In this document: one piece after another, positions 11,283 to 45,944 of the stretch
How the letters are laid out: each line of letters starts with the position of its first letter
How positions within the stretch are numbered: the first letter of the stretch is position 1
NCBI RefSeq assembly: GCF_036365525.1
Contig: NC_090387.1
Coordinates: forward strand, 76,135,300 to 76,199,299
DNA: 64,000 bases
DNA from: Heterodontus francisci
Lineage: Eukaryota
Direction: 5' to 3'
The notes under the pieces: generated by a model
The model's database searches: none
What the model was told of the DNA's origin: nothing
Seen by the model: the letters and a program-made list of their open reading frames with translations, nothing else
Program-made: the position numbers and the translations under genes

Positions 11283-11397
11283 CTTTGACAGTACCTCCGC
11301 TTAAAATAATTCCTAACGATGACAATCAGCACCATTATTATCAATATACCCACTAACTGCCGGGACAACAAAAAGAGGGTAGCAACGTTAGCAGCAC
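11283..11397 (-). pseudogene. Gene B TM exon
   Basis: GAANVATLFLLSRQLVGILIIMVLIVIVRNYFKRRYCQ, donor AAG|gtgaga. The acceptor reads tgtcg instead of tgtcag. Confidence 0.75.
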
Positions 11398-11699
11398 CGA
11401 CAATCACAGAGTAACGGGGATATAATACCGACGGGCATGAATGTCAATTAAACCAGCAAGAAAACCCAGGGATACACGGGATCAGAACTAATCGTTTAAA
11501 GACCATTTAATACAAATACAAATAAAAATATTCAAATAAAATGCTAACAAATGGAACAATTCACAATCTGACCAATAAATCCTCAATATACTAAACGAAT
11601 GCAGTAACATCAAATGCTAACACGTGTTCACAAACGTGTGCTGGCATTAAGAAAAAACGATAAACGAGAGAACGTTTCTGAAAAATGAATTGACCATAC

Positions 11700-11997
11700 C
11701 TTCAAAGTTGCAATTGACATTGGCTGGAGTCTGAAGAGAGACATGACACACTTGGCAGCTGTATGTAGCTCCAATGTGGGATGGCGCCGTATCTTTTATA
11801 ATTCTGCAAATCTCATACAGTCCCACTCTGGTTTGCTGTTTAGTAGTATTGATCCCGGTTCCAATTTTTGTGTTATTCTTATACCAAGTCACATTGAGAT
11901 CTTCAGGGTAAAACTTAGCTGTTTTACAGGAGAATCGGAGAAGTGGATAGACGGAATTCAGACTCAACTAAGTCGATCCTCAGAGGAGTGGGCAGAA
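11700..11997 (-). pseudogene. Gene B C1 exon, frameshifted
   Basis: VLPTPLRIDLVESEFRLST/+1/LRFSCKTAKFYPEDLNVTWYKNNTKIGTGINTTKQQTRVGLYEICRIIKDTAPSHIGATYSCQVCHVSLQTPANVNCNFE. 298 nt versus 297 in gene A; donor gtatgg. Confidence 0.88.
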
Positions 11998-12306
11998 CAT
12001 GTGAAGAAAAGAAAGTTATTTTATGCTTGAAACATTGATTAATATATAATTTCTGTCGTCTATAATTTAGGAGGCGAGTTAGGGACGGATCTCTTTAACA
12101 TCGTGTTTCATTGGAAATATTTCAAAATATTATGAAACAGGAAGCTAGAAATTACATGGAATACGAATCGTAGAGCCATCGATCGTAGAAGGAGGCCATT
12201 GGTTTATCGTGCCTTTGTTGGCACTTTGAAAGAGTTATGCAATTAGTCCCACTTCCTGCTCTTTCTCTATAGCAGTGCAAAATTTTCCTTTTCAAGTACA
12301 TATCCA

Positions 12307-13778: not shown

Positions 13779-13834
13779 TAAACAATTCCCTCTTGAAAAT
13801 TACTGTTGAATCTGCTTGCTTCCAGTTAGTGAAT

Positions 13835-13990
13835 TCCAGATCACAGCAGTTCTGATGAAAGGTCACGAAACGTTAACTCTGTTTCTCTCTCCACAGATGC
13901 TGCCAGATCTGCTGAGTATTTCCATCACAGCTTTTATGTCAAATTTCCAGCATCTGCAGCATTTTGCTTTTATTATCCAGATCACAGCAG
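13835..13990 (+). mobile_element. Short hammerhead-bearing Penelope-like element with partly deleted helix II
   Basis: agttctgatgaaaggtcacgaaacgttaact; 15-bp TSD tccagatcacagcag at 13835-13849 and 13976-13990. Confidence 0.7.
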
Positions 13991-15030: not shown

Positions 15031-15351
15031 CGGCCACAAGGAGCTGTGAGCCGGTTCCATTCCCAAACATTCCTCCCCGGCAGTACACGGAGCAGTAATA
15101 GCGGCCAGAATCTTTGAAGCTTACATTCCAGAGATGGATGGTGGCTCCTCCTTTTTTCAGAAGTTTATACTGTCTCTTGCTCGCTTCTCCGTCGTTTAAG
15201 AACTCGTCATCACCATGTCGCTACCACTGAACCTTTACAACTAATTCATCTTGAAAGACGGGGAATGTGCAGTGGAAGGTGATGTTGGCTCCTCTGAGCG
15301 CAACTTTGATTGGAGGGTTTTGCCCCACTGTGGATTCGCCAACAGAAAGCC
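15031..15351 (-). pseudogene. Gene B VJ-type exon with nonsense codon
   Basis: LSVGESTVGQNPPIKVALRGANITFHCTFPVFQDELVVKVQW*RHGDDEFLNDGEASKRQYKLLKKGGATIHLWNVSFKDSGRYYCSVYCRGGMFGNGTGSQLLVA, donor gtaagt. Shares RGANxxxxCTFP and the WW position (now W*) with gene A. Confidence 0.9.
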
Positions 15352-15759
15352 AATGGAAACATAAAATTAAACATCTCATTGTACTTATAAATAAAGATAG
15401 AAACAAGGTTTGAAAAGAATAATGAAATATAACAACGATAAACCGCGAATGGCGATAAGTTCACCGATCAAATAATATCGCGCTCCATATATTGTTCTGA
15501 ACTCTATCTTGTAAATACTGGTGTATGTAATCCCCAGGATCAGTATACCTGGAAGCATTTCGGACAATGGAAGTTGATTGAATGCAAGTAAATAAGGGAC
15601 CTCCGATAGTTTGGAGTGAGTGGGTTTACAGCGGACCATCGAGAAATTTGTAAGAGGTTGGTAACGTCACCTGTACAGCAGTGGTTTTAATAAACATGTG
15701 TATTTCCTTTAATAAAGACGCCTTGAATGACAACGGCGGTGTCAATCGTGGTTCCGAAC

Positions 15760-16273: not shown

Positions 16274-16439
16274 CTAATCTCTAGCCACGAACCCTAACAT
16301 TAGGCTCGATCAATCTACCCCCTCACCGTAAACTATGATGCGAGCTCTGTCCTTAAATATAGACCGTGCGGTGTCAATGGCGCCGTGCATGGCCGGGTTC
16401 TCGTCATGAATACAGGTTGGCTGAGGTCAACGGTAATTG

Positions 16440-16447
16440 TGACGTCA
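16440..16447. promoter_or_regulatory. Full CRE palindrome TGACGTCA in a CpG-rich patch ~800 bp upstream of the gene B leader
   Basis: Exact motif; function not shown. Confidence 0.3.
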
Positions 16448-16606
16448 TTATCAACAAAGTCTGCTGCTTTATGGACAGTTAATTCTTAACCGGATGTTGG
16501 TAGAGGTCTGCGCAGGCATAGCATTTGGAGATATCGTATACGAGTACTTTGAGACATAACATGTGGCGACTGTAGCATGATTGGGAGAAATAGGTGACTT
16601 TGGAAT

Positions 16607-18040
16607 TATAGAATCATAGAGTCGTAGAGTCATACAGCACAGAAACAGGCACTTCGGCCCATCGTGTCTGTGCCGGCCATCAAACACCTACCTATTCTAT
16701 TCCCATTTTCCAGCACTTGGCCCGTAGCCTTGTATGCTATTGCAATTCAAGTGCTCATCTAAATCCTTATTAAATGTTGTGATGGTTTCTCCCTCTAACG
16801 CCTCTTCAGGCAGTGTGTTCCAGATTCCAACCACCCTCTGGGTGAATTTCTTTCCACAAAGCCCCTCCAAACCTCCTGCCCTTAGCTACAATCTATTTAA
16901 GGTTATTGACCGCTCAGTAAAGGGAAAAAGTTTCTTCCTATCTAATTTATTTATGCCCCTCATAATTTTGTATACCTCAATCAAGGACCCCATCAGCCTT
17001 CTCTGCTCTAAGGAAAACAACACTAGCCTTTTCACTCTCACTTCATAGCTCAAACGCCCCAGCCCAGGCAACATCCTGGTGAATCTCCTCTGCACCCTCT
17101 CCAGTGCAATCACATCCTTCCTATAGTGTGGTGACCAGAGCTGTCCACAGTACTTCAGCTGTGGCCTAACTAGCATTTTATACAGCTCTAACATAACCTC
17201 CCTGCTCTTATAGTCTATGCCTCGGCTAATAAAGGCAAGTGTCCCATATGCCTTCCTGACCACCTTATCTACCTGTGCTGCTGCCTTCAGTGATCTATGG
17301 CCAAGTACACCAAGGTCCCTCTGACCTTCTGTACTTCATAGGGTCCTACCATCCATTGTATATTCCCTTGCCTTGTTAGTCCTCCCAAAATGCATCACCT
17401 CACACTTCTCAGGATTAAATTCCATCTGTCACTGTTCCACCCATTTTACCAGCCCATCTATATCGTCCTGTAATCCAATTTTCGTGTCATCTGCGAACTT
17501 ACTGATCATACCTCCCATATTCACGTCTAAATCATTAATGTACCCTACAAACAGCAAGGGTCGCAACACTGGTCCCTGCGGTACACCACTGGTCACAGGT
17601 GCCCACTCGCAAAAACAACCCTCGACCATCACCCTCTGCCTCCTGTCACTAAGCCAATTTTGGACCCAATTTGTCAAATTGCCCTGGATCCCATGGGCTC
17701 TTGCCTTCTTAACCAATCTCCCATGTGGGACCTTATCAAAAGCCTTATTGAAGTCCATGTAGACTACATCAACTGCTTTACCCTCATCTACAAATCTAGT
17801 CACCTCCTCGAAAAATTCAATCAAGTTAGTTAGATACGGTCTCTCCCTGACAAAGCCATGCTGACTATTCCTGATTAACCCCTGCCTCTCCAAGTGGAGA
17901 TTAATCCTGTCCCTCAGAATTTTTTTCAATAGTTTCCCAACCACTGATGTTAGACTCACCAGCCTGTAATTACCTGGTTTATCCTTGCTACCCTGGTACC
18001 ACATTCGATGCCCTCCAGTCCTCTGGTACCTCTCTTATGG
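16607..18040 (-). mobile_element. CR1 LINE, same subfamily as 3384-5779
   Basis: ORFs 16886-17263 and 17429-18004 encode RT; tail (atagagtc)n. Confidence 0.9.
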
Positions 18041-20480: not shown

Positions 20481-22869
20481 GTCAACATAATTTCTTTCTT
20501 TTGGGCCTCCTTATCTCGAGAGACAATGGATACGCGCCTGGAGGTGGTCAGTGGTTTGTGAAGCAGCGCCTGGAGTGGCTATAAAGGCCAATTCTGGAGT
20601 GACAGGCTCTTCCACAGGTGCTGCAGAGAAATTTGTTTGTTGGGGCTGTTGCACAGTTGGCTCTCCCCTTGCGCCTCTGTCTTTTTTCCTGCCAACTACT
20701 AAGTCTCTTCGACTCGCCACAATTTAGCCCTGTCTTTATGGCTGCCCGCCAGCTCTGGCGAATGCTGGCAACTGACTCCCACGACTTGTGATCAATGTCA
20801 CACGATTTCATGTCGCGTTTGCAGACGTCTTTATAACGGAGACATGGACGGCCGGTGGGTCTGATACCAGTGGCGAGCTCGCTGTACAATGTGTCTTTGG
20901 GGATCCTGCCATCTTCCATGCGGCTCACATGGCCAAGCCATCTCAAGCGCCGCTGACTCAGTAGTGTGTATAAGCTGGGGATGTTGGCCGCTTCAAGGAC
21001 TTCTGTGTTGGAGATATAGTCCTGCCACCTGATGCCAAGTATTCTCCGAAGGCAGCGAAGATGGAATGAATTGAGACGTCGCTCTTGGCTGGCATACGTT
21101 GTCCAGGCCTCGCTGCCGTAGAGCAAGGTACTGAGGACACAGGCCTGATACACTCGGACTTTTGTGTTCCGTGTCAGTGCGCCATTTTCCCACACTCTCT
21201 TGGCCAGTCTGAACATAGCAGTGGAAGCCTTACCCATGCGCTTGTTGATTTCTGCATCTAGAGACAGGTTACTGGTGATAGTTGAGCCTAGGTAGGTGAA
21301 CTCTTGAACCACTTCCAGAGCGTGGTCGCCAATATTGATGGATGGAGCATTTCTGACATCCTGCCCCATGATGTTCGTCTTCTTGAGGCTGATGGTTAGG
21401 CCAAATTCATTGCAGGCAGACGCAAACCTGTCGATGAGACTCTGCAGGCATTCTTCAGTGTGAGATGTTAAAGCAGCATCGTCAGCAAAGAGGAGTTCTC
21501 TGATGAGGACTTTCCGTACTTTGGACTTCGCTCTTAGACGGGCAAGGTTGAACAACCTGCCCCCTGATCTTGTGTGGAGGAAAATTCCTTCTTCAGAGGA
21601 TTTGAACGCATGTGAAAGCAGCAGGGAGAAGAAAATCCCAAAAAGTGTGGGTGCGAGAACACAGCCCTGTTTCACACCACTCAGGATAGGAAAGGGCTCT
21701 GATGAGGAGCCACCATGTTGAATTGTGCCTTTCATATTGTCATGGAATGAGGTGATGATACTTAGTAGCTTTGGTGGACATCCGATCTTTTCTAGTAGTC
21801 TGAAGAGACCACGTCTGCTGACGAGGTCAAAGGCTTTGGTGAGATCAATGAAAGCAATGTAGAGGGGCATCTGTTGTTCACGGCATTTCTCCTGTATCTG
21901 ACGAAGGGAGAACAGCATGTCAATAGTCGATCCGCGCATCAACACGAGCAGAATTTCTCACCCACAGCTGTTACAAAAATTTCTAAATTCACTTGTAACA
22001 GCCCTTCAAAACACTCCCACAGGGGATGCTGAGACCAAGTGGGCCCACATCAGAGACGCCATCTATGAGTCAGCTTTGACCACCTACGGCAAAAGTGCGA
22101 AGAGAAATGCAGACTGGTTTCAATCTCATAATGAAGAGCTGGAACCTGTCATAGCCGCTAAGCGCATTGCACTTTTGAACTACAAGAAAGCCCCCAGCGA
22201 TTTAACATCCGCAGCACTTAAAGCAGCCAGAAGTACTGCACAAAGAACAGCTAGGCGTTGCGCAAACGACTACTGGCAACACCTATGCAGTCATATTCAG
22301 CTGGCCTCAGACACCGGAAACATCAGAGGAATGTATGATGGCATGAAGAGAGCTCTTGGGCCAACCATCAAGAAGATCACCCCCCTCAAATCTAAATCGG
22401 GGGACATAATCACTGACCAACGCAAACAGATGGACCGCTGGGTTGAGCACTACCTAGAACTGTACTCCAGGGAGAATGCTGTCACTGAGACTGCCCTCAA
22501 TGCAGCCCAGCCTCTACCAGTCATGGATGAGCTGGACATACAGCCAACCAAATCGGAACTCAGTGATGCCATTGATTCCCTAGCCAGCGGAAAAGCCCCT
22601 GGGAAGGACAGCATTACCCCTGAAATAATCAAGAGTGCCAAGCCTGCTATACTCTCAGCACTACATGAACTGCTATGCCTGTGCTGGGACGAGGGAGCAG
22701 TACCCCAGGACATGCGCGATGCCAACATCATCACCCTCTATAAAAACAAAGGTGACCGCGGTGACTGCAACAACTACCGTGGAATCTCCCTGCTCAGCAT
22801 AGTGGGGAAAGTCTTTGCTCGAGTCGCTCTGAACAGGCTCCAGAAGCTGGCCGAGCGCGTCAACATAAT
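20481..22869 (-). mobile_element. Young RTE-clade LINE, 5'-truncated with 5' inversion
   Basis: 20492-~21931 minus: open RT/C-terminal ORF (GVKQGCVLAP, LLFADD, C-terminal CSTCGRACHSRIGLYSH) with (AAAG)n tail. ~21932-22860 plus: the open upstream part of the same ORF (..NYRGISLLSIVGKVFARVALNRLQKLAERV). TSD gtcaacataat at 20481-20491 and 22859-22869. Confidence 0.92.
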
Positions 22870-23249
22870 AAGAACATTAGATATAGGAACAGAAGTAGGC
22901 CATAGAGCCCCTCGAACCTGCCCTGCGATTCAACAATATAACGGCTGATCTTCTACATCAATTGCACTTTCCTGCCCTATCCCTTTGATTTCCTTTGTGC
23001 CCCAAAATCCATCAACCTCAGTCTTGAATATGCTTAATGACTGAGCATCCACAGGCCTCTGGAGTAGAGGATTCCAAACATTCACAACCCTTTGAGTGAA
23101 GAAATTTCTCCTCCCATTCCTAAATAACTGACCCCTTCTCCTGAGACAATGACCTCACGTTCTAGATTCTACAGTCAGGAGAAACAGCCTCTCAGCATCT
23201 ATCCTGTCACTTCACTCACTATAAAAATGTTACTAGTTTCAATGAGTAC

Positions 23250-25652: not shown

Positions 25653-25781
<129 letters not shown>

Positions 25782-28469: not shown

Positions 28470-28652
<183 letters not shown>

Positions 28653-30143: not shown

Positions 30144-33100
30144 AGTTTATGGACATGTCAGATACAAGGTCATGGTGGCCATGTGGTCCAGTTGCCCTGA
30201 GCATCTTCAAGCGTGGAATTCCAGCCATAGACTTTAATCAGTTCACCAATTCTTCAAACCAAACTCAGTGGCATTTTGCAGCACCTGCCCTGACTTTCTT
30301 GGTGCTCAGTTGGGATTCTGTTCTACTCTACACCAACGATGAAGCCAAGGAACTGAACTGGCGCTTTAAAAAAAAGTTTATTTCTGCTTGTGTGTAATTG
30401 TTTGCATTTTCTACTTTATTAAATAGCAAAGAAGCCTTTATTTTCTGAGGGTTTTAATTTGCGCAGTTTGTTGCTTCGCCCTGTTCATTTTGACTTCTAA
30501 TTTGTAATTGGATGTAGCACTCTAAACCGAGTTGGATTGATACACAGTGAGGCGTCTAATTCTGCTGCTTTAGATTGTAGAAGCATAACTTTTTTAATCT
30601 CGTCTTTTGGGGCAGTAGTTTTCTCGTCCAACTCCAGCCTCATACAGTTTTGGTCTGCTTTATGATCAGATCTGGAACTCTGACCTTTGGCTTATAATAT
30701 TGGTTGAGATGTTAACTCTTTCCTGTTTTTCTGAAAATACTTGTACTTTCTTTTAGCTGTTTCATTCATACCATGGCAGAGGTGTGCAAATGATCAACTG
30801 CAGTTAGTTTTTAGGCTTGTCCAATTTGCTGCATTATCTGCTGGGTGTAATTTAGATTTTGTGTGTAATTTAATCTTCAGATAATTGAAATGTTCAGAAT
30901 TAGTGGATCTGACAGTAAATGTCAGATTGCAGGCAGTCATAAAGCTTCATACAAATCTTCATGATCTTGTCAAAATATATTCAAGTATCCGATGGGGAGG
31001 CCGGGAGGAGAGGCGTGGGCCTGCTGTGGGGAGGGTGGAAATTCTTGAAGCCACAATGGAAAAATTCAATTTGAACTGCACTAGTGCTATAGAATTAGCC
31101 TGGGGTGTGAAAATCGTTCAGTCGATGAGTACAGCTTGGTCTTGAAAGGTTGTGAACAGCCAATGGGTCTAGGTATGTGTCCTCAGTTGGTAATGGGTCC
31201 ATCGTTCATTCTAACTTCAGCCTTTAGTTCTAATTCTGAACTTCTGATTTTGGAAATGTCTTTTTATATATTCACACTGAATATTGCAACATGGAAGGAT
31301 TAAATATTTATTTCACACTATCTCAATGCCTTGTAAATGACTTGAGTTCTTAGCAAGAGCCACGTGATGAGTTAGAATATGGGAATGTGAGGATCATTGT
31401 ACCAGTAAGATGTGCTAGAACGTTACCTGTGTCAGATGCTGGGTACAGGTTTTAGAAGTGTTGTGACTTGTATTGCTGTGGACATGTATAATTCATACTG
31501 GGTCTGTGCTGCATGCGATTATACAGTGATGTATTTACCTTCCAAAGCTAGTCAGTGCCTGGAAAGAGCTGTATAAACAGTCAAGTGGCAAGGTGTGAAT
31601 GGGTCTGTCACTACTGAGTGATAGGAAAATGAGCTTGTATTGCCTAAGTAATGCAAAGCACTTGGCTTAAATAGAACAACAAAGAACAAAGAAAATTACA
31701 GCACAGGAACAGGCCCTTCGGCCCTCCAAGCCTGCGCCGATCCAGATCCTCTATCAAAACATGTCGCCTATTTTCTAAGGGTCTGTATCTCTTTGCTTCC
31801 TGCCCATTCATGTATCTGTCTAGATACATCTTAAAAGACGCTATTGTGCCCGCGTCTACCACCTCCGCTGGCAACGCGTTCCAGGCACCCACCACCTTCT
31901 GCGTAAAGAACTTTCCACGCATATCCCCCCTAAACTTTTCCCCTCTCACTTTGAACTCATGACCCCTAGTAATTGAATCCCCCACTCTGGGAAAAAGCTT
32001 CTTGCTATCCACCCTGTCTATACCTCTCATGATTTTGTACACCTCAATCAGGTCCCCCCTCAACATTTGTCTTTCTAATGAAAATAATCCTAATCTACTC
32101 AACCTCTCTTCATAGCTAGCGCCCTCCATACCAGGCAACATCCTGGTGAACCTCCTCTGAACCCTCTCCAAAGCATCCACATCCTTTTGGTAATGTGGCG
32201 ACCAGAACTGCACGCAGTATTCCAAATGTAGCCGAACCAAAGTCCTATACAACTGTAACATGACCTGCCAACTCTTGTACTCAATACCCCGTCCGATGAA
32301 GGAAAGCATGCCGTATGCCTTCTTGACCACTCTATTGACCTGCGTTGCCACCTTCAGGGAACAATGGACCTGAACACCCAAATCTCTCAGTACATCAATT
32401 TTCCCCAGGACTTTTCCATTTACTGTATAGTTCACTCTTGAATTGAATCTTCCAAAATGCATCACCTCGCATTTGCCCCGATTGAACTCCATCTGCCATT
32501 TCTCTGCCCAACTCTCCAGTCTATCTATATTCTGCTGTATTCTCTGACAGTACCCTTCCCTATCTGCTACTCCACCAATCTTAGTGTCGTCTGCAAACTT
32601 GCTAATCAGACCACCTTTACTTTCCTCCAAATCATTTATGTATATCACAAACAACAGTGGTCCCAGCACGGATCCCTGTGGAACACCACTGGTCACACGT
32701 CTCCATTTTGAGAAACTCCCTTCCACTGCTACTCTCTGTCTCCTGTTGCCCAGCCAGTTCTTTATCCATCTAGCTAGTACACCCTGGACCCCATGCGACT
32801 TCACTTTCTCCATCAGCCTACCATGGGGAACTTTATCAAACGCCTTACTGAAGTCCATGTGTATGACATCTACAGCCCTTCGCTCATCAATCAACTTTGT
32901 CACTTCCTCAAATAATTCTATTAAGTTGGTAAGACATGACCTTGGCATTCCATGATGCTATCACTGGTCTCTCGCTGTAACTTTGGCAACCCATGAGATA
33001 TGATAAATGGCTCTCTACACTCTGTGGTACCAAAATTCTTGATAGCCTTGTGCTTGCACTACATCGCACCAATGTATAGACCATTGGTATGTATACTCTG

Positions 33101-34474: not shown

Positions 34475-34597
34475 TCAGCTTCTCTCTTTCGTTGTCACGT
34501 TTACTTCAGCATACACTGCGCTCTTGTCTTGTTTAGGTTTTGATGTTTTCTTGGTATCAGCGTAAGTCAGCTGGTTCTCACCGCTTCTTTGTTTAGT
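34475..34597 (-). CDS. Gene A exon 8, terminal coding TKQRSGENQLTYADTKKTSKPKQDKSAVYAEVNVTTKERS*
   Basis: Acceptor ttacttttacag; SIRP-alpha-like tyrosine motifs LTYAD(T) and AVYAEV; stop TGA. Confidence 0.8.
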   Translation of the reverse strand, partial: TKQRSGENQLTYADTKKTSKPKQDKSAVYAEVNVTTKERS

Positions 34598-37500
34598 CTG
34601 TAAAAGTAATATTTCGTATCACCCGTTAATCTATTGCTCACTCATTGCTTGAGGTAATCGAGGTTTGAAAAAGGCTGCAGTGAAACTTCTTCTCATCAAT
34701 TACCAACTTCAGATTGAAACCGGATTTTGTTTTGGTTTATTTCTCCAGTTTCTCCCTTCTCTGCAAACGATTCATGTTTTGTTCCAATTCCAGGCCCTCC
34801 CCTAAATCTTACTGGTATTCCGCTTTAACCTTCATATAAAATTAGTTCTGATGAAAGGTCACAGACCTGAAACGTTAACTCTGTTTCTCTCTCCATAGAT
34901 GCTGTCAGACCTGCTGAGTATTTCCAGCACTTTCTGTTTTTATTTCAGATTTCCAGCATTATGCTTTTATAAAATTAGTTCTCCTGCTGATGCAGCCCAT
35001 TAAGGGAGCACATTAATACTTCAATTAAAATAGACAAATGAATTTCATACTGGTCTGTTCATGGTATTTGGAATGACGATAATGTAAAGCACCGTTTTTA
35101 AGGCCCTGTTGTTTGAGCCTCGACAGCCAATGTGACCCTTACCCCATGGATGAGGCTCCAAGGTCACATTTTCAGCCGCCTTTCCCCTAACCCCGCCGAT
35201 CTCTGAGACACGAAGGTCAAATATGATGAACCTTGGCTGAGATCAGCTGACACAACACAGTGGTAGATGCAACCTGGGATCTTTGCATTTCCTGCAGCCC
35301 AGAGTCGTTCCACTTAACATTGCTGATATATCAATGAATGATCTGAGCTGTACCTTGGCATACACCGTACTCTGCTCCTTCTATCAGTGTTTCGCATTGC
35401 TCCTGGTCCTGGTTTCATCAGTGGCGTACGGATATTTTTGTTTCGTCTGTAAAACAGATATTTGCCAGTCTAACCAAGTGAGTTTCTTATTTTGTAATTT
35501 GTAATCGCTATTACAGCCAGACGCGAAAAAGAAATGGGGCTAATTTTGACTGACTGCTGTCGTGTAAAACGGATGGAGAGACTCCGTAACCCGTTTTACT
35601 TCTCTCATAGTTTCTATTTTCAACCAAGTCAGCGGGAGAGATACCGATTCGCCAGCACTCATTTTATACTGTCTCATAAAGTCAACACTAACTCGGTAAA
35701 TTCTGTATAAGTTGTTAGAGCTGATTCTGTTATTACAGAGTGTTGATTTTGTGCAGAAATGATTTGGATATCATTCGCGCCAATCGCTCGCCCTACCTTG
35801 GGATAGACGGTGTGCTCTATCTCATATCTACGTTTGGGGGGTCCTTTGTCGTCTCTGAAGTTTAGAAGTTCACTTCGTACTTGTCTAACCTGTAGAAACA
35901 AGATATGAAATACTGATAGCTGAGAGTCGAATACAGCAGCCAGCTACCATCAAGTGGAACTGAGTCTGAAAGTGTCAATATGGAGACAGTAACCTATAAA
36001 ACGGGCTTAATTGCATTCTGTCCACTCACAATGATTTTATTCAATATCTCACCCATAAGGTGAGGAATAATGTTCCAAATACGTTCTTAATCCTCAGTCA
36101 GCACTATCTACTGGAAAACTTTACAGGCGGAGCCTGAAATTGTCCTCGTTCCACTTCCAGTCATTCCATTCCGAACAGGAAATCAGCCGCTGGGACCCTG
36201 GCCATTCAGCCCCTCCCTCCGCAACTACCTAACCCAGGAGTTCCGGGTGCAGGCCAATTAGGTACAGGTAGCATTGTCCCAACTGATACACCAGAGGTGG
36301 GGACGGCACCTGGGACCTTCCGAATCTAAAAGCGGGAGATGGAAATCTGAAATAAAAACATAAATTTCTGGAAATACTCCGTAGAGAGGGAAGCAGAGTT
36401 CACCTTTCAGGTTTGTGGCCTCTTATGGAAGGTCTCAGGTCTGAAACGTTGCCTCTGTTTCTCTCACCTCCGTAATCTGTCTGGTTGTGCTGCACAACGT
36501 ATCAAATAAGGAACTGGGTATTTCCGATTTTTAAAATAATTTGAATTATGAAATGGGAAGTTGTCAGAAGAATATTTTACAGTCCATACAAATATTTATC
36601 TTAAAATCAAGGCATAGAGTACAAAATCAAGGAATTTATGCAAAACCTCTCTAAATCACTGATGAGACCTCAGCTGGAACATTGTGTTCTATTCTGGGCA
36701 CTACACTTTAGGAAAGATGTCAAGGCCTTGGAGAGGGTTCAAAGGAGATTTACTGAATGGTATCAGGAATGAGCGACTTCAGTTATGTTGGGCAGATGAG
36801 AAAATCTACGATTGTCCTCCTTAGAGTAGAGAACGTAAAGGGGAGATTTAATAGAGGTGTTCAAAATTATGAGAGGTTTTGATAGAGTAAATAAGGAGAA
36901 ATTGATTTCACTGGTGGTTGGGCTGGTATCCAGGGACAGAGATTTAAAATAATTGGAAAATAATCAGGGAAGATGAGGATATTTTTAATGCAGCCTGCGG
37001 TTGTGATCTGGAATGCACTGCGTGAAAGGGTGGTGGAAGCAGATTTAATAGTAACTTTCAAAAAGGATATATACTTGAAATGAAAATAAAATGTAGGGCT
37101 ATTGGTAAAGAGTCGGCGAGTGGGACGAAATGAATAGTTGTTTCAAAGAGCCGGCACAGGCACCACGGCCTCTTTCTTTGCTGTGGGATTCTATGAAATT
37201 AAATTAATATCTTCTGGACTGAATGTAAAATGTCTTGCTATTCACCCGCCTCTTTTTGGAAGAAGAAAAACATTGTCACCCTACCCGCTCTTCAGCATGA
37301 CCCGCTTCCTCAGAAATGTTCTTACTGCCTGAGGGAAAGAGAAGTTCACATTGAATAGCTTAATCAGTATACAAGCAAAACAACATCATGTTTTCACTGC
37401 TAAACACAGGTACTGTGTAAAGTAAGGAGACTTGAAGGTACAGATCTCTCTGAAGATATTAAGCAGTACCAGCCATTACAGTGCAGAATGCTGTGTATTA

Positions 37501-40500
37501 CCTTCTGATACCCCGCAGTGGCGTTGCACCAACGGAGGAGACCTTGCCTTTTTGTGAGAGTGTAAAACAGGGTTGTCCAACCTATTCTCGTGACGTTGGG
37601 GGGTGGGGGGGGGGGGGGGGGTTGGGACGGGGCAGCACAACACAATTTTTGTCTTACGTAGGGGGCCGGTGAAACAATTTCGGAAAGGTAAAGGCATTAA
37701 AATTATCTTATTCTTAATCAAAACAACAATAAATGTGCATTTTTGTGAGGAAGCTTTAAATAAGATTAATTTATTGACTTACTTTCTCATCACTATGTTG
37801 GACACTGATTTAGTGAGATACCTGACATTTTTTGCTTGCATAGGTAGTCAATGTTTGTCTGCACACCTGTTGTAGTGATGTGGAGTATTCTGGATGGATG
37901 TCCATCTGTCAGGAATGACCTTGATCACTCTTTCTCCCTCTCCCTGTCTCTCTCTCTCTCCCTGTGACCCCCTCTCTGTTTTCTCCTGCTCTGTGTTGTC
38001 TCTCCCCCGGTGTTGTCCTTGCTGTCTGTGTCCCCCCTCGCTGCACCCCTCTTTCCCTGGCGCCCCCTCTCTCACCGCTCTCTCTCAGCCCCCCTTCTCT
38101 CTCTGCCAATTGCAGAGCAGCTTTGTGGTTGGTCAGGAATAGCGGTTTCCGAGCTTAGCACGACCTCAGGTTTTTTCGGTGCCCGCCGGAAAACCCTGAA
38201 TCTGTCCTAAGTTCGGAAACCGCTATTCCGCCTCGCAGCACCTGTCAGCTGTGAAACTGACGCGATTAAAAAAAAAACCGGTCTGGAAGAAGAAGCCAAT
38301 GAAAAAATTCTTATCTCCGAAATTAGCAGTCACGCACCCCTGGCGAGGATGAGGAACGGCCCGGTACTGTTTACATCCGCTGGCCGAACCTTTGAAGGGC
38401 CGGATCTTGGCCAGCCGGCAGCATGTTGGATAACCCTGGTATGAAACATGTAACAGAGAGTGGGCAATCCACTGTACATCTCATAATTAGAATGGAATTA
38501 AAATCCGGAAGAGATGTAAAATAGGTTGCCTCTACCAATTCGATATCACCCATTTTACATTATGGCAGAAAGACAAAATTTACTTCGAAGTGTTTGCACT
38601 TCAAAATCTGGACCCCAAATGATAGTAAAAAAAATGTGCAACACATCAACAATTCCGGGTGTTGCAAAATAAAAGTGAAAATGTCGAACGAACAGTTGGA
38701 ATGGGAAGGTGAAATATTTGCATTTCAAAATCCGGTATATATGGTCATATTCAACTATCAATCATATAAAGCTCTTATTCTATCAATTCTTTATTCTTCT
38801 ACAATGAATGACGATTCACCTGACCTTTCTCTATTGTAAAAATACAACTGGACCTTAGAAAATAAAAGTATTCGACGGAATAAGAAATATTCTTACCATC
38901 TGATGCCTTTAATTTGAGTCTGGTCAAAATTATTATGAATAATAAAATTGCCAGTATGCCACCTGCACATCCAAAAATCAGCGGAAATTTATTATCAGTA
39001 CCTGCAGGGTCAACAGATAATTGAAATAAGAAACTGTAGAGCACAGCGAAACATATACACAGAGAATCGTGGGTCACGCAAGGGAGGACGAGTTGCAAAG
39101 GTGTCTCTTAGAATAATGGCGTCTACAGTCAGTGGGGCTGGACCCCTTTTATTTCTAAGGGCAGTATATTATAATGTGCACCAAACAATGGCAACTGTAA
39201 TCCAGAAATGAAATTTATGGAGAAAACAAATCCTATTCCATAAAGGCACAGGAAGCTTCTCTCTGCACGTGAGGGTTGTTTATTAAGAGTAAAGGGAGTT
39301 ACACTTTTTTACTTTTTGTTTATTCATTCATGGGATGTGGGCGTCGCTGGCCAGGCCAGCATTTATTGCCCATCCCAAATTGCCCTTGAGAAGGTGGTGT
39401 TGAGCTGCTTTCTTGAACCGCTGCAGTCCGTGTGGGGTAGTTACACTTATAGTGCTGTTAGCAAGGGAGTTTCAGAATTTTGTCCCAGTGACAGTGAAGG
39501 AACAGCAATATAGTTCCAAGTCAGGATGGTGTGTGACTTGGAGGGGAACTTGCAGATGGTGGTGTTCCCATGTATTTGCTGCCCTTGTCCTTCAAGTTGG
39601 TAGAGGTCGCGGGTTTGGAAGGTGCTGTCTCAGGAGCCTTGGTGCATTGCTGCAGTGCATCTTGCAGATGGTAAACACCACTGCCACTGTGTGTCGGTGG
39701 TGGAGGGAGTGAATGTTTGTAGGTGGGGTGCCAATCAAGTGGGCTGCTTTGTCCTGGATGGTGTCGAGCTTCTTGAGTGTTGTTGGAGCTGTACCCATCC
39801 AGGCAAGTGGAAATTATTCCATCACACTCCTGACGCGCCTTGTAGATCGTGGACAGGCTTTGGGGAGTCAGGAGGTGAGTTACTCGCTGCATGATTCCTA
39901 GCCTCTGACCTGCTCTTGCAACCACGGTATTTATATGGCTACTCCAGTTCAGCTTCTGGTCAATGGTAGCCCCTAGGATGTTGATAGTGGGGGATTCAAC
40001 GATGGTAATGCCATTGAATGTCAAGGGGTGATGGTTAGATTCTCTCTTGTTGGAGATGGTCATTGCCTGGCACTTGTGTGGCACGAATGTTACTTGCCAC
40101 TTATCAGCCCAAGCCTGGATATTGTCCAAGTCTTGCTGCATTTCTACATGGACTGCTTCAGTAGCTGAGGAGTCACGGATGGTGCTGAACATTGTGCAAT
40201 CATCAACAAACATCCCCACTTCTGACCTTATGATTGAAGGAAAGTCATTGATGAAGCAGCTGAAGATGGTTGGGCCTAGGACACTACCCTGAGGAACTCC
40301 TGCAGTGATGTCCTGGAGCTCAGAAGATTGACCTCCAACAACCACAACCATCTTCCTTTGTGCTAGGTATGACTCCAGCCAGCAGAGGGTTTTCCTCCTG
40401 ATTCCCATTGACTTCAGTTTTGCTAGGGCTCCTTGATGCCATACTCTGTCAAATGCTGCCTTGATGTCAAGGGCACTCACTCTCACCTCACCTCTTGAGT

Positions 40501-43500
40501 TCAGCACTTTCGTCCATGTTTGAACCAAGGCTGTAATGAGGTCAGGAGCTGAGTGGCCCTGGCGGAATCCAAACTGAGCATCACTGAGCAGGTTATTGCT
40601 AAGCAAGTGCCGCTTGATAGCACTGTTGATGACACCTTCCATCACTTTACTGATGATTGAGAGTAGGCTGATGGGCAGCAATTGGCCAGGTTGGACTTGT
40701 CCTGCTTTTTATGTACAGGACATACCTGGGTAAGTTTCCACATTGCAGGGTAGATGCCAGTGTTGTAGCTGTACTGGAACAGCTTGGCTCGGGGTGCGGC
40801 AAGTTCTGGAGCACAGGTCTTCAATACTATTGCTGGAATATTGTCAGGGCCCATAGTCTTTGCAGTATCCAGTGTCTTTAGTCGTTTCTTGATATCACGC
40901 AGAGTGAATCGAATTGGCTGAAGTCTGGCATCTGTGATGGTGGGGACTTCAGGAAGAGGCCGAGATGAATCATCAACTTGGCACTTCTGGCTGAAGATTG
41001 TTGCAAATGCTTCAGCCTTATCTTTTGCACTGATGTGCTGGGCTCCCCCATCATTGAGGATGGGGAGGCACCTCCTCCAGTTAGTTGGTTAATTGTCCAC
41101 CACCATTCACGGCTGGATGTGGCAGGACTGCAGAGCTTAGATATGATCCGTTGGTTATGGGATTGCTTAACTCTGTCTATTGCATGCTGCTTACGCAGTT
41201 TGGCATGCAGATAGCCCTGTGTTGTAGTTTCATCAGTTTGACACCTCATTTTGAGGTATGCCGAGTGCTGCTCCTGGCATGCTCTCATGCACTCTTCATT
41301 GAACCAGGGTTGGTTGCCTGACTTGATGGTAATGTTAGAGTGGGGGATATGCCGGGCCATGAGGTTACAGATTGTGGCTGAGTACAATTCTGCTGCTGCT
41401 GATGGCCCACAGCGCCTCCTGGATGCCCAGTTTTGCGTTGCTAGATCTGTTCGAAATCTATCCCATTTAGCACGGTGGTAGTGCCACAAAACACGATGGA
41501 GAGTATCCTCAATGTGAAGGTGGGACTTAGTCTCCTACCAATACTGTCATGGACAGATGCAATTGCGGCAGGCAGATTGGTGAGGAAGAGGTCAAGTATG
41601 TTTTCCCCTCTTGTTGGTTCCGTCACCACCTGCCGCATACCCAGTCTAGCAGATATGTCCTTTAGCACTCGGCCAGCTCAGTCAGTAGTGGTGCAACCGA
41701 GCCACTCTTGGTGATGGACATTGAAGTCCCCTACCCAGAGTACATTCTGTGCCCTCGCCACCCTCAGTGCTTCCTCCAAGTGTTGTTCAACATGGAGGAG
41801 TGCTGACTCATCAGCTAAGGGAGGGTGGTAGGTGGTAATCAACAGGAGCTTTCCTTGTCCATGTTTGATCTGATGCCATGAGACTTCATGGGGTCTAGAG
41901 TCGATGTTGAGGACTCTCAGGGCAACTCCCTCCCTACTGTATACCACTGTGCCGCCACCTCTGCTGGGTCTGTCCTGCCAGTGGGACAGGACATACCCGG
42001 GGATGGTGATGGCAGTTTCTGGGACATTGTCTGTCAGGTATGATTCCATGAGTATGACTATGTCAGGCTGTTGCTTGACTAGTCTGTGGGACAGCTGTCC
42101 CAACTTTGCCACAATCCCCCAGATGTTAGTAAGGAGGACTGTGCAGGGTCGGCCTAGCAGTGCGACACCAGACTGATGCGCAACGGCTGCAAAGGTGGCA
42201 AAGTCTTCCATTCTTCAGCGCTAGCATTCCTCAGCAGTGTTACTAGAGAATACCTGCTGTAAGCTTTAGTAGGTAACAAGCAACTTGCATTTATACAGCA
42301 TCTTTAACACAGTAAAACGTCAAAAGGCACTTCACAGAGAATCACCAAACACAATGTTAAACCGAGCCACATAAGGGGATATTAGGAAAGATGCGGATAG
42401 AGTTCAAGGAGAGTCTTAAACGAGAGAGAAATAGGCAGCCGGAGAAGTCGGGAATTTCAAAGTTTAACAGGTAGACAACTGAAGGCACGGTGTGCAGAGA
42501 ACATTTGAACAGAATGATATTTCCACATATTCAATTTAAATTCACGGGATGTAAAGTGACTCTGGTAGAAACGATCCATTTTATGTGTAGTTTCATTTTA
42601 TTTGGCAAGAATTTGACTAGGAATAATCTTTCAAGTTTTGAGCAGTTGCACATCAACCTCCCGTTTCAGATCGCTTCAGGGAAATACTTTCCTTCCTTCA
42701 CCTACTTGAATATTTTATTTCGTTCCCATAAATGTGGCATTGAGAGTAAATACAGTCCACATTCACTCCGTATCCTCGTGTTTGAACAGTGTTCCAGCTA
42801 CATGTCTAATCAGTAAATACAGATTGAAGTAGTTACCAAGCTCCCCGCTGGATATGTTTTCAAACGTACCTCGATTGACGGTGTAGCTGACGCTAGCAGG
42901 TACCAGAAGAGAGATATGAGATGCCAGACAGGTGTAAACAACTTTCTTCGGGGCAGGTTGTGCTTCTTCCAAAAAACTGGAAACTTCATAAAGTTCTTCC
43001 GTGCTCTTGTTTTTCACAGTTTCTATTCCGCTCAGAATTTCGACACCATCTCTTAACCAGGAGATTTCTAAACGCTCCGGGTAAAAGGCAGCCGTTTTAC
43101 ACTCGAGTTTCAGAGATGTCGCTGAAATTCCTTCAAGAGAAACGATTTTCAGGGGGGTCGGGGGAACTTTAAGAGAAAGAGAAAAAGATTTTTTTTTAAT
43201 TTAATGGAGCGCATTCTAATTTTCTACCCTTCTTATGCTGTTACACCCCTACGGTTACGATAGTTTTCGGTGCTGTCGTTCTTTAAACCTCATGTTTGCA
43301 CTTATTTTGCAAATTGTTGTACGGCACACAGCAAAATGACGGGCTGTATTACAAACGATGCACAAAGAAGATGAATCTCCAAGGGCTGGTTACAATCAGG
43401 GAAGCAGACGCCACTGCTCTGAATGGAAGTATCAGATCCTGGCGCGGGATTGGGGTTAGTAGTAATGATCTCAAGTGAGATTCATGTCCGAATATATCGG

Positions 43501-45944
43501 AGTGAGCGCAAACCAGTTCACACGAACAGTGGAATCGTCTCTCCTTATTCTGTAATCATTGCTGGACTAAACATTTTGTGTGTTTTTTTCCAAAATTGGT
43601 CGTTGTTCGAATATTTCATATATTTCAAAATATTGAGAAGATGATGTGTGTAATCAAAATATCTCTGATGTCGATATTGAATACAGACAGGATGTTGTTA
43701 TATGTACAGATTAGAATCCGTGCATTACAACATTGCAACGTCTATGGTGGAGATTTCAGATTGTGCAGCTTTCACCTGAGGAACTTTCTCTAGAGGGGAA
43801 AGAGGGCTGAAACATTTTTCACCTTATGAAAGGGTTATATTGGTAATTATATATCAATGTGTAGATCACAACATCCATACAGAAGAGGGAAACAGAATGG
43901 GAAATCCTAACTCAGAGTGCATGTTTTATATAATTCCAGGGTTTTCGCCTTTCTCCAAGTTCATTCGGTTTGTTTAACACGTTTTGCCTCGAGAAGATTC
44001 TGCTTATATCAGTCCTACATTAACCATTTACTAATGCGAACCAGAGTCCGCTCGATCTACAGTCACTGTTTAGCTGGAAGGACAGGCCCTTTATTAGGTT
44101 TGCATTGTTTTGCCAATTTATTACCATCTCCTTAACATTTTTTCTTTCCACATTTACTTTTCCGACGTTGTAGTAATAGAAAATGATTAAATTAGGGACA
44201 TTATTAACTTGCAAAATTATATTAGCCTTTATTCCAAACAAAGGCTCAATATTCCTTCATTCTTTTACCATGGATCTGCTTTCGAGATAATATGTGATGC
44301 GGTAGAATTGCAGTGGCGGAGGGCGGTGTTCTTTTGATCTCTTGCCGTAATTCCGTGTGGGGTTTGGGAGTGTAAATGGAAATCATGAATGACAAATACG
44401 GGAGCCCAGGCGTTTTTGCAAATGCTCGGTGATATCCTTCCAGTATTTGACGGGTTGAGAGTGTATTAAAGAAAGTCCAATTGGCGTACGACAGAAGTTC
44501 AAACACGGGCATTGGGTAGCTTCACTGTTCAGCAAGCTGGGCTGGAATCCAGCATTGAGGGCAGGATCAACACCTCCCTTCTCACTGAGTTGTAGGAATC
44601 ATTTGTGAAAAGAATTTGGTAACTCAAGCAAGTTATCAAAGGACACAAGTGCACAGCATAAATTGCGGACAGAGGAACAGGAGTAGGCTATTCAACCCCT
44701 CGAGCTTGCTGTACCATTCATTTAGATTATGATTGATTCGCACATTAACTCCATTTTACCGACTTAATTCCTTTCCCTTGAGATCCATACCTGCAAATAT
44801 CTATCCACCTCAAATATCGGACAACTTGGTATAGAAAGTATTAGGTCGGCAATTTTGAGCAGTGGAAAGTTATCTGGTGCGAAAAATACGCACGGCGGTA
44901 GTAGGAAAGTGTTCACCTGAGTTTGTGACCTTGTCGGGGCGGATTAGATGGTCTTTAATGTTGTATAAAAGACTTGACCGAGGTGGTGTTAAAATTGTTC
45001 CCATTGTTGCACTTTGGCACCGTTATTTTGGTGATCTTATCCTGGCCATCTTATCCTATTGATTAATTTCAAATTAAGCTAAAACATTTTTTTCACTACC
45101 TTGGCTTAATAACAATTGTAACTGCACCAAAAGCACTCATTGGGTGAAAAACACTTTGGAGTGTTATGAGGACAACGAGTGGGTGAAATTGGTCTTTAGG
45201 CAGTAGCGCAAAACTGGCGATAGTGAATCGGCGGTCGTTGTACACCGGGGTCAATGGAAAAGAAAGTCCCGAGATGTGTAAAACGAATTTGTTATCAGCA
45301 AATTTTCTTCCAGTGAAATTCCATATATTGCACACAGCTGAAAAAGTCCCACTCCCTGGTACAATGACACTTACCGTACACAGTAAGCTGGGAACCACTT
45401 CCATCTCCAATAGATTCTTGCTGTTTTACTTTACAGTAATACACTCCAGAATCGGCAACACTCGCATTCAGAACATCAAATGAACTACTTCCCTTTTTTA
45501 CATTAAATCGCTTTCTGCTGTCTGGTTCCAGAAACGATTCCTCGCCGCGTTTCCACCAAAAAACATCAGGAGTATTTTGAAATAGGGGGAATGTACAGAA
45601 CATGGAAACATTCGCGCCTCTGACAACCTTCAAGAATTTAGGGAACTGATCCACTTTGTTCGAAGTTACTTCAGCGGCTATTAGAAAATAAACAAGAACG
45701 GTGGTAACAGTTGCATACATTAGATAAAGAAAATTAACTAAGAGAAATAAGAAACAAGAACCATTAAAAACACCAACAAGCGAATTGGAGAAACACAGTA
45801 TGTAATTTTGCAATGCATAACAATTGTAGAATCTTCTAAAATATGATTTAAGCTATTCTGAAACGGCTGCATATACTAACTAAAGGTACCTGGCCAAACA
45901 ATTCCCAAAAGAGCCATGTACTGAACTGAAGCTCTCAACGACAT
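34475..45944 (-). CDS. Gene A: type I IgSF receptor, L-VJ-C1-TM-cytoplasmic tail (SIRP/NKp30-like architecture). Exons 45890-45944, 45375-45677, 42870-43166, 38897-39001, 37285-37328, 35797-35889, 35354-35446, 34475-34597
   Basis: All 7 introns are GT..AG with compatible phases (1,1,1,1,0,0,0). The ORF is open for 319 aa up to TGA TAG in exon 7; skipping the 93-nt exon 7 gives 339 aa ending at TGA 34475-34477. Confidence 0.88.
34844..34880 (+). ncRNA. Minimal type I hammerhead ribozyme motif at the 5' end of a short Penelope-like element (34844-34967)
   Basis: AGUU-CUGAUGA-A-AGGUC(ACA)GACCU-GAAACGUU-AACU: conserved core, helix II, helix I AGUU/AACU, palindromic helix III. Flanked by the 15-bp direct repeat tataaaattagttct (34835-34849, 34968-34982). 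Confidence 0.7.
35354..35446 (-). CDS. Gene A exon 7, cytoplasmic with two in-frame stops: TKQKYPYATDETRTRSNAKH**KEQSTVYAK
   Basis: Acceptor ctgttttacag, donor AAG|gtacag, 93 nt, phase 0-0. Ends TVYxK like exon 6 and starts TKQ like exon 8. TGA TAG at 35386-35381. Confidence 0.75.
35797..35889 (-). CDS. Gene A exon 6, cytoplasmic VRQVRSELLNFRDDKGPPKRRYEIEHTVYPK
   Basis: Acceptor cttgtttctacag, donor AAG|gtaggg, 93 nt, phase 0-0. Confidence 0.8.
36600..37190 (+). mobile_element. Degraded CR1 3' fragment
   Basis: agacctcagctggaacattgtgttctattctgggca..ttggagagggttcaaaggagattt. Confidence 0.8.
37285..37328 (-). CDS. Gene A exon 5, membrane-proximal cytoplasmic GSKNISEEAGHAEER
   Basis: Strong acceptor cttctctttccctcag, donor gtaggg. 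The 44-nt exon converts phase 1 to 0, as the next exons require. Confidence 0.75.
37568..38438. mobile_element. Non-autonomous hAT-type DNA transposon (MITE) in gene A intron 4
   Basis: 14-bp TIRs cagggttgtccaac / gttggataaccctg (13/14 match); 8-bp flanks gtgtaaaa / gtatgaaa (6/8), consistent with a decayed hAT TSD. Confidence 0.7.
38897..39001 (-). CDS. Gene A exon 4, transmembrane
   Basis: GTDNKFPLIFGCAGGILAILLFIIILTRLKLKASD: uncharged hydrophobic span followed by basic stop-transfer residues. Acceptor ccctgcag, donor gtaaga. Confidence 0.9.
39306..42150 (-). mobile_element. CR1/L2-group LINE with near-complete degraded ORF2 (APE endonuclease + RT), in gene A intron 3
   Basis: Frameshifted ORFs with GDFNVHH (APE), LDIKAAFD, GVPQGSVLGP and MFVDD; A-rich 3' end at ~39306-39325. 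Confidence 0.9.
42870..43166 (-). CDS. Gene A exon 3, Ig C1-set domain
   Basis: VPPTPLKIVSLEGISATSLKLECKTAAFYPERLEISWLRDGVEILSGIETVKNKSTEELYEVSSFLEEAQPAPKKVVYTCLASHISLLVPASVSYTVNR: C1 hallmarks LxCxxxxFYP, W, YxCxxxHxxL. Acceptor ctttctcttaaag, donor gtacgt, 297 nt. Confidence 0.93.
45375..45677 (-). CDS. Gene A exon 2, VJ-type Ig domain
   Basis: AEVTSNKVDQFPKFLKVVRGANVSMFCTFPLFQNTPDVFWWKRGEESFLEPDSRKRFNVKKGSSSFDVLNASVADSGVYYCKVKQQESIGDGSGSQLTVY: Cys-Trp-Cys triad, DSGVYYC, J-like GxGSQLTV. Acceptor ttttctaatag, donor gtaagt, 303 nt, phase 1-1. Confidence 0.95.
45890..45944 (-). CDS. Gene A exon 1, signal peptide MSLRASVQYMALLGIVWP
   Basis: ATG at 45944, hydrophobic stretch, phase-1 donor CCAG|gtacct (gene B has the homologous CCAG|gtatac). 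An alternative phase-1 donor gttagt would end the exon at 45881. Confidence 0.7.

Follow-up and report, generated by a model that had tools for sequence, protein, structure and literature searches.

A 64,000-nucleotide stretch of the Heterodontus francisci genome (assembly GCF_036365525.1, contig NC_090387.1, positions 76,135,300 to 76,199,299 of the forward strand; hereafter the window) was found to contain two related genes, A and B, both on the minus strand. They follow a common plan of a leader exon, an exon in which variable and joining segments are joined in the germline (VJ), an exon for one C1-set immunoglobulin (Ig) domain and a transmembrane (TM) exon, with gene B lying downstream of gene A. 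The window is likely to be a decayed duplicate of a tandem A-then-B unit belonging to a large cartilaginous-fish family of VJ-C1 paired receptors, and not a functional pair. Gene A is a copy from the inhibitory lineage in which the ectodomain and the TM are intact and the tail has been stripped of both ITIMs (immunoreceptor tyrosine-based inhibitory motifs). Gene B is a dead copy (pseudogene) of a member with an arginine in the TM (Arg-TM), from a second subfamily. Judged by its sequences, the family appears to be an unnamed VJ-single-C1 paired-receptor family of cartilaginous fish, which we would not place in SIRP, NCR3, B7 or UrIg.

The motifs from which a sequence-only reading had recognised two same-strand genes of this plan were all present on the minus strand. 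In gene A they were RGANVSMFCTFP (45621), DSGVYYC (45453), GSGSQLTV (45402), PTPLKI (43161) and CKTAAFYP (43101), and in gene B RGANITFHCTFP (15295), DSGRYYC, GTGSQLLV, PTPLRI (11992), CKTAKFYP (11928) and TLFLLSRQLVGILII (11380-11336). The two genes were 39% identical in V and 37% identical in C1. The leader, VJ, C1 and TM exons of gene A were all intact and were phase-1 exons with GT-AG sites (Table 1). Its VJ exon ended in GDGSGSQLTVY followed by gt; the V framework and the G-x-G-x-x-L-x-V J motif thus stood in a single open exon with no interruption of the recombination signal sequence (RSS) type, as the same reading had proposed in calling the genes non-rearranging. The domain assignments were upheld by Pfam, in which the VJ exon of gene A matched V-set (E 8e-10, above the curated cut-off) and I-set (E 2.5e-8), and C1-set (PF07654, cut-off 21) gave 33.0 bits (E 8e-8) for gene A and 37.8 bits for gene B. 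Models of the C domains of B7 and butyrophilin (BTN) proteins, including the CD80-like PF08205 and PF22705, scored 14.8-16.5 bits with the C1 exon of gene A, under their own cut-offs. Only one C1 exon lay between the V and the TM exon of gene A.

Among annotated H. francisci proteins, identity to gene A was 90-95% and none was identical. The V of gene A was 90-92% identical to P0151, P0163 and P0161, and its C1 was 95% identical to P0151. In domain trees (V and C1), which were built exon by exon, gene A grouped with P0151, P0161 and P0163.

The tail exons of gene A were located by tblastn with the closest paralogues (P0151, P0161, P0162 and P0163), and an ab initio scan of splice signals and tyrosine motifs gave nothing useful. 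Four exons with tyrosines, T1 to T4, were obtained. The neutral TM and the multi-exon tyrosine tail attributed to gene A were therefore there, with a TM of the GCAGG type, but no canonical inhibitory motif was left in that tail. The motif QLTAYA, which has been taken out of T2, is the membrane-proximal ITIM-like motif of the family consensus, and P0151 has VRQAPSEQLTAYATLNLRDDKG where gene A has VRQVRSELLNFRDDKG. The ITIM lost from T4 reads LTYAALxL in the family consensus. These are exactly the two motifs conserved from chimaera to sharks. None of the tail tyrosines of gene A fitted [SIVL]xYxx[ILV] or TxYxx[VI], so that neither a canonical ITIM nor a canonical immunoreceptor tyrosine-based switch motif (ITSM) remained. 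With its two conserved ITIMs deleted and tandem stop codons in one tail exon, gene A is not an ITIM receptor. It would at best serve as a 'decoy' receptor that does not inhibit, and would otherwise be turning into a pseudogene; we see only a slight chance that the exact removal of the two ITIMs marks selection for such a decoy instead of neutral decay.

In gene B, the lesions affect the VJ and C1 exons (Table 1). Its V was 91% identical to H. francisci P0086, which has VQWWRHGDDEF at the region of the in-frame stop. The C1 exon was still recognised as C1-set (Pfam E 2.4e-9), and tblastn returned it as two pieces in different frames. It was 83% identical to P0086/P0204, the closest relative of gene B overall. 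Gene B and P0086 grouped with a branch value of 100 in both the V and the C1 trees, and the terminal branch of the C1 tree was 0.19 for gene B against 0.021 for P0086, as decay would predict. The arginine noted earlier at the N-terminal end of its TM proved to be a feature of the family, as the TM open reading frame (ORF; SRQLVGILIIMVLIVIVRNY) could be aligned with the TM segments of two Arg-type members, P0187 and P0072, at equal R-x16-N spacing, the best match being P0187 (LMYRSIVGILVIILLTMIILNH). No usable acceptor was visible for this ORF, the sole AG inside it coming from the R-Q codons themselves. A poly-pyrimidine stretch followed by CAG in the ORF was considered as the true acceptor, by which the Arg would be intronic, and was rejected because the Arg is part of the alignment of the ORF with the conserved R-x16-[DN]H TM found in P0187 and P0072. 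A wrong-frame translation of the same ORF was weakly like a C1 G-strand (E 4-22), and this was dismissed as chance.

The intact counterpart of the unit in the window is probably an adjacent pair of H. francisci genes encoding P0151 and P0086/P0204. In the annotation, accessions XP_067906043-46, of the A type, are followed directly by XP_067906047-48, of the B type, which suggests that an intact A-then-B unit stands at another place in the cluster, the window carrying its decayed duplicate. In the history proposed here, the A-B unit would have been duplicated, gene A would have lost its ITIMs through the 18-nt and 15-nt in-frame deletions, and gene B would have died.

In RNA, the V-C1 joint was seen at the predicted bases, though in contigs derived from paralogues. 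These contigs came from three runs of one sample of one organism, represented by small sets of Logan contigs, which drop rare variants. The splice joint 43166|45375 (GT..AG, minus strand) was present in contigs of all three runs, which covered the exons and had zero depth in unique intron sequence, and contigs ended or joined exactly at 45375 and 45677, the borders of the V exon. The contigs differed from the window at 3-6% of positions and had a 3-nt deletion at 43129, as P0151 does, and they were for these reasons assigned to paralogues of 94-97% identity. The region 42869-43020 was matched exactly by RNA; P0151 has the same amino acids there, and the match is not assignable to gene A. The RNA thus confirms the V-C1 splice and the exon borders for the paralogues.

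When the V exon of gene A was compared with 1.84 billion representative proteins, dozens of single-V proteins of 130-490 residues and 35-91% identity were recovered, together with giant multi-Ig proteins. Nearly all of the single-V relatives carry the J motif, a PPTPL hinge and CxTAxFYP. The attribution to cartilaginous fish was borne out, since all 30 of the 30 clusters with source names that were looked up were from cartilaginous fish, as were 44 of 44 matches of a profile search in 5.8 billion proteins, which scored word-sharing candidates only and is therefore uninformative on distant bony-vertebrate relatives. The sharks in the name look-ups were Heterodontus, Scyliorhinus, Mustelus, Carcharodon and Chiloscyllium; Heptranchias, Rhincodon, Hemiscyllium and Cetorhinus occurred among named search matches. 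Rays and a skate were represented by Mobula, Hypanus, Hemitrygon, Narcine, Pristis and Amblyraja, and chimaeras by Callorhinchus. Annotation of these proteins was automatic only, as had been suspected, and the RefSeq names were inconsistent: 'tyrosine-protein phosphatase non-receptor type substrate 1-like' (SIRP-alpha-like), 'NCR3 ligand 1-like', 'tapasin-related protein-like', 'Ig lambda-1 light chain-like', 'TCR beta chain-like' and 'SIRP beta/gamma-like'. Such names mask a single family. In the open-access literature, no description of the family was found; key subscription papers, on the NCR3 family and UrIg, were outside reach, and a prior description is possible.

Many paralogues lie on one 99.65-Mb chromosome in H. 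francisci, and family members with consecutive accessions lie on one 18-Mb scaffold in Callorhinchus. In an alignment of 27 sequences (A1), each with a V and one C1, the landmarks of both domains were invariant, and G111, G113, L116 and V118 of the J motif were present in 27 of 27. One H. francisci protein, P0162 (an XP entry named 'NCR3 ligand 1-like isoform X2'), was a hybrid. Its V clustered with P0185 (branch value 98) and its C1, TM and tail fell in the gene A clade (99), while the C1 of P0185 itself stood in a deeply separate clade; this implies exchange of V exons between subfamilies in the cluster. A short C-terminal segment, GK(E/G)RL.IS.SAA.NS.R.., was found to end the TM-less isoform P0163 as well as the Arg-TM members P0165, P0166 and P0174, which suggests a shared alternative terminal exon. 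P0159 is an isoform of P0151 in which the TM exon is skipped, and is therefore probably secreted.

The two genes had been proposed to form an inhibitory/activating pair. This does not hold for the pair in the window, in which gene A is without ITIMs and gene B is a pseudogene, but on the evidence of the sequences the paired design is real for the family, with inhibitory and activating signalling predicted from motifs. The members are membrane proteins of type I that have a split leader, a compact germline-joined VJ domain, one C1-set domain, a TM and a tail. TM types were scored by a script over all family proteins collected, and two mutually exclusive types were found. The neutral type, G-C-A-G-G, occurred in at least 20 proteins, most of them with ITIM tails. 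The Arg type, R-x16-[D/E/N]-H followed by 6-49 residues with no distal ITIM, occurred in 8 distinct proteins (P0017, P0048, P0055, P0072, P0165, P0166, P0174 and P0187) from 5 species (of Scyliorhinus, Heptranchias, Heterodontus, Carcharodon and Chiloscyllium) and in at least three V subfamilies. Intact Arg-TM paralogues of gene B therefore exist, and one of them, P0048, is from H. francisci. The conserved tail in A1 consisted of xAYAxL (ITIM), RTVYAQTK, LTYAALxL (ITIM) and xEYAE[IV] (ITSM-like), and the ITIMs and an ITSM of the TEYAEI type were present in members from chimaera, sharks and rays, gene A itself being without them. Near-identical ectodomains were seen on both TM types in Scyliorhinus, where the long-tailed P0164 and the Arg-type P0165 were joined on a branch with a value of 100 and had V and C1 branches of 0.054 or less; this is a signature of paired receptors.

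GCAGG-TM members, with a tail in which an ITIM is followed by TVYAQTK, a second ITIM (LTYAAL) and an ITSM-like motif (xEYAE[IV]), would inhibit by recruiting phosphatases with Src homology 2 (SH2) domains. The short-tailed R-x16-[D/E/N]-H members would signal through an adaptor with an acidic TM residue and an ITAM (immunoreceptor tyrosine-based activation motif); coupling to FcR-gamma or CD3-zeta is something we only infer. Among receptors of the leukocyte receptor complex, those that couple to FcR-gamma (NKp46, Fc-alpha-RI, OSCAR and GPVI) resemble the Arg-TM members in being short-tailed and in having an Arg close to the outer TM end and an acidic residue towards the inner end, probably at a similar spacing, but have ectodomains of the C2/I type instead of VJ-C1. 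As separate observations, the small-xxx-small pattern and the Cys of GCAGG could mediate dimerisation of ITIM members, and in P0164 the conserved Cys of GCAGG is replaced by Arg.

The family was compared with known receptors by profile and by structure. With the profile of A1, the matches in the PDB were Ig lambda (135 bits), UrIg2 (128 bits), Fab chains, SIRP-alpha (104 bits), SIRP-gamma (91 bits) and plain V-C1 light chains (about 88 bits). By this measure Ig light chains and UrIg2 appear to lie at about the same distance from the family as SIRP-alpha does. With a V-only profile (A2), the best full-length single V was the shark VNAR (4hgk_C, 60 bits, E 1.5e-15), followed by pIgR, T-cell receptor (TCR) and CD79b. 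The family V also scored on I-set adhesion domains, namely those of titin, Robo, NCAM and DCC. The structural comparison used an AlphaFold model of P0151 and a representative set of 48,161 structures. The ectodomain of this model had a predicted local distance difference test score (pLDDT) of 90-97 and a compact V without C'/C'' strands. By Foldseek its best matches were Fab light chains (about 215 columns). The V was best matched by the skate IgNAR V (8ht3_A, Z 14.9, root mean square deviation [rmsd] 2.2 A), and the C1 (residues 117-216) superposed on HLA-DP beta-2 (Z 15.9, rmsd 1.4 A over 97 residues), Ig CL (Z 15.1) and IgNAR C3 (Z 14.3). In this modelled comparison the Z values are too close together to assign kinship. 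The neighbours in the ESM Atlas were unnamed C1-set clusters and B7/butyrophilin-like clusters (butyrophilin, CD276, HHLA2 and CD200).

Ig light chains and TCR chains share the leader-VJ-C1(-TM) shape with the family, and they gave the top matches by Foldseek (Fab light chains) and by profile (Ig lambda). They differ in that the family has its J motif inside the V exon, with no RSS-split V or separate J, and a signalling tail of its own; identity is about 20%. The V of IgNAR (VNAR) is likewise compact and without C'', is the best single-V match by A2 and by structure, and resembles I-set adhesion domains as the family V does. However, VNAR is RAG-assembled from V, D and J and sits on a heavy chain with five C domains, secreted or membrane-bound, and with the V exon of gene A alone TCR alpha outscored VNAR. 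UrIg and UrIg2 (Flajnik et al. 2023, 2025) are, like the family, found only in cartilaginous fish and have a single-exon VJ with a split leader followed by C1-set domains. UrIg2 was the second-best PDB match of the family profile and also of the C1 exon, its V-domain match with the profile covering only framework region 3 (FR3) to J. UrIg is secreted, UrIg2 has nine C domains, and both are single genes linked to the major histocompatibility complex (MHC) or the Ig/TCR complex (PMC12227049). Unlike either of them, the family combines a single C1 with an ITIM tail or an Arg-TM and forms a large multigene cluster arranged in tandem.

Several known families have to be weighed as possible identities of the genes. 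The family might be the cartilaginous-fish orthologue of SIRP alpha/beta/gamma minus one C1, and so an already characterised family, which we regard as rather improbable. SIRPs also have a V with a J-like motif, a C1, an ITIM tail and charged-TM partners. Like the family they comprise non-rearranging ITIM-tailed and short-tailed members with similar ectodomains, and the SIRP-like names are the commonest in RefSeq. SIRP-alpha, with its first two domains (2wng d1-d2, the V and the first C1, rank 6), was the top-scoring family other than antigen receptors with A1. However, Ig lambda, UrIg2 and many Fab chains scored equally or above, light chains of V-C1 only still reached 88 bits, and no SIRP came up among the best 60 PDB sequences with either single exon (V or C1) or with A2. 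A single C1 stands in the family where SIRPs have two (V-C1-C1), and the family V is compact, without C'/C'' in the model; the charged residue of its Arg-TM forms is an Arg at the outer TM end, followed 17 residues on by [D/E/N]-H, whereas SIRP-beta has a mid-TM Lys. The family may thus work like SIRP-type paired receptors and be shaped like one antigen-receptor chain. Quite improbable is the reading in which the proteins are not receptors but shark B7-H6 or B7-like ligands for NKp30-type receptors. B7-H6 was the best two-domain structural match of the P0151 model (4zso_E, Z 17.1, with 188 aligned residues and 23% identity), 'NCR3 ligand 1-like' is the automatic name of many members, and the ESM Atlas neighbours include B7-like clusters. 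Yet unrelated V-C pairs lay within 1-3 Z units, and Z depends on the modelled interdomain angle; Pfam favoured C1-set over the B7/BTN models for the C exon; in none of four sequence searches (V exon, C1 exon, A1 and A2) did B7-H6 reach the best 60 PDB entries; and the full GxGxxLxV J motif and the paired Arg-TM and ITIM forms are hallmarks of receptors. Kinlein and co-workers reportedly described in 2021 a nurse-shark NCR3 family of eight divergent subtypes, and it is very improbable that the present genes belong to it. A non-rearranging VJ domain with an NGT-containing J motif would be common to both, and in NKp30 (NCR3), which is also germline-joined, the TM begins on its outer side with an Arg, as in the activating form here. 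But NKp30 is without C1, whereas a C1 exon is present in the family and is spliced to the V exon in RNA, and human NKp30 was missing from the top 60 PDB matches of all four sequence searches, including those with the V exon and with A2, where VNAR, TCR, pIgR and CD79b were found. No match in the protein searches bore an NCR3 receptor name. Later papers from the same laboratory describe NCR3 as a 'VJ single exon' gene, and UrIg as a novel non-rearranging VJ-C1 gene, UrIg and UrIg2 being elasmobranch genes of this type (PMC12227049; PMC10751288).

Several observations weigh against taking the window for a decayed unit of a paired-receptor family. The letters of gene A's own V exon were carried by none of the RNA contigs, position 45421 differing in all of them, although Logan contigs drop rare variants and gene A may still be expressed. 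T3 may be skipped, and AVYAEV, TVYPK and YEIE remain, so that some signalling by gene A is possible. One ITIM-tailed member, P0051, likewise begins its TM with an Arg, though a partner of the x16-[DEN]-H kind is missing, and Arg alone is therefore not diagnostic of the activating type. According to a 2014 survey the FcR gamma chain arose in bony fish (PMC4016189), so that FcR-gamma is no more than a candidate adaptor. Gene A could still be a working inhibitory or other signalling receptor, with T3 skipped and LTYADT, AVYAEV, TVYPK and RRYEIE recruiting SH2 proteins, only gene B being dead. This is unlikely. In its favour, the leader, VJ, C1, TM, T1, T2 and T4 exons of gene A are open with GT-AG sites. 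As T3 has 93 nt and phase 0-0, skipping it would preserve the frame, and the RefSeq model of the close paralogue P0161 is without counterparts of the T3-region exons. The C-terminal xVYAEV is conserved in the close paralogues P0151, P0161 and P0162. The misfit of every remaining tyrosine to the canonical patterns, the deletion of just those two motifs that were kept from chimaera to sharks, and the RNA contigs, none of which is gene A-specific, speak against such function and for the decayed duplicate.

Table 1. Exons of genes A and B and the retroelement remnant in the window
Feature	Position	Strand	Details
Gene A leader exon	45890..45944	-	MSLRASVQYMALLGIVWP + 1 nt; phase-1 donor GT 45889-45888; tblastn to P0151 residues 1-19, 84% identity
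Gene A germline-joined VJ exon	45375..45677	-	303 nt, open; RGAN..CTFP, WW, DSGVYYC, GDGSGSQLTV
Gene A C1 exon	42870..43166	-	297 nt, open; starts VPPTPL (hinge); CKTAAFYP, YTCLASH
Gene A stalk/TM exon	38897..39001	-	GTDNKFPLIFGCAGGILAILLFIIILTRLKLKASD; neutral GCAGG type, PLIFGCAGGILAILLFIIIL; aligns with TM of P0151, P0161, P0162
Gene A tail exon T1	37285..37328	-	GSKNISEEAGHAEER; matches GSKKNSEEAGQAEE of P0160 and P0162
Gene A tail exon T2	35797..35889	-	93 nt; 18-nt in-frame deletion takes out QLTAYA
Gene A tail exon T3	35354..35446	-	93 nt, phase 0-0; TGA TAG at 35386-35381 where paralogue encodes R-Q
Gene A last coding exon T4	34475..34597	-	15-nt in-frame deletion, LTYAALQL to LTYADT; AVYAEV kept; stop TGA 34477-34475
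Gene B leader exon	15519..15558	-	MLPGILILGITYT + 1 nt; tblastn to P0073 leader; compare P0086/P0204 leader MLPSILILLITHN
Gene B VJ exon	15031..15327	-	in-frame TAG 15223-15221 replaces second W of invariant WW
Gene B C1 exon	11700..11997	-	acceptor AG to TG (11999-11998); 298 nt; 1-nt frameshift just before CKTAKFYP cysteine
Gene B TM ORF	11279..11416	-	ends ATLFLLSRQLVGILIIMVLIVIVRNYFKRRYCQR, then stop; Arg type, R-x16-N-Y; motif at 11362-11300
LINE remnant (endonuclease and reverse transcriptase ORFs)	39521..42211	-	Pfam RVT_1 E 2e-34, Exo_endo_phos E 1.7e-11

The window is without runs of N, and tblastn with 19 family proteins as queries revealed no further family exons in it. The remnant of a long interspersed nuclear element (LINE) fills most of the 3.9-kb C1-TM intron of gene A and accounts for the very deep repeat coverage at 40050-42250, which was present in all four RNA runs, including that of a second organism. 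Other reverse-transcriptase ORFs (RVT_1, E 1e-22 to 1e-23) were located at 20548-22948, 31644-32948 and 17429-18004, between and around the two receptor genes, and the intergenic space is mostly retroelement debris. An exon on the plus strand (28536-28650), tail-to-tail with gene A, matched the C-terminal end of Pfam NUDIX_2 (CFIm25/NUDT21 family, E 8e-12). The GC-richest stretch of the window (50100-51800, GC 0.53) had overlapping ORFs of 110-196 amino acids on both strands with no Pfam match.

UrIg and UrIg2 are the current leading candidates for relics of the gene invaded by the RAG transposon. The resemblance of the present family to a pre-RAG antigen receptor, which the sequence-only reading had suggested, would be one of architecture. 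We see only a slight chance that the VJ exon of the family is a surviving non-rearranging relative of the cell-surface receptor domain ancestral to the V of IgNAR/NAR-TcR, a suggestion based on the compact VJ exon, the lack of C'/C'' strands and the matches to both I-set and V-set models. If this were true, a paired-receptor cluster, besides the single-copy UrIg genes, would preserve a V-C1 chain of the pre-RAG antigen-receptor type. As read here, the window illustrates turnover of the cluster, with duplication of an A-B unit, targeted loss of the ITIMs of gene A and death of its Arg-TM partner, gene B; the exchange of V exons between subfamilies in P0162 would be further turnover. A large multigene VJ-C1 family with inhibitory and Arg-TM forms, extending from chimaeras to sharks and rays, would widen the set of candidate relics of the RAG target. 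It would also mean that the earliest living jawed vertebrates had paired receptors in the style of SIRP whose ectodomains are shaped like those of antigen receptors.

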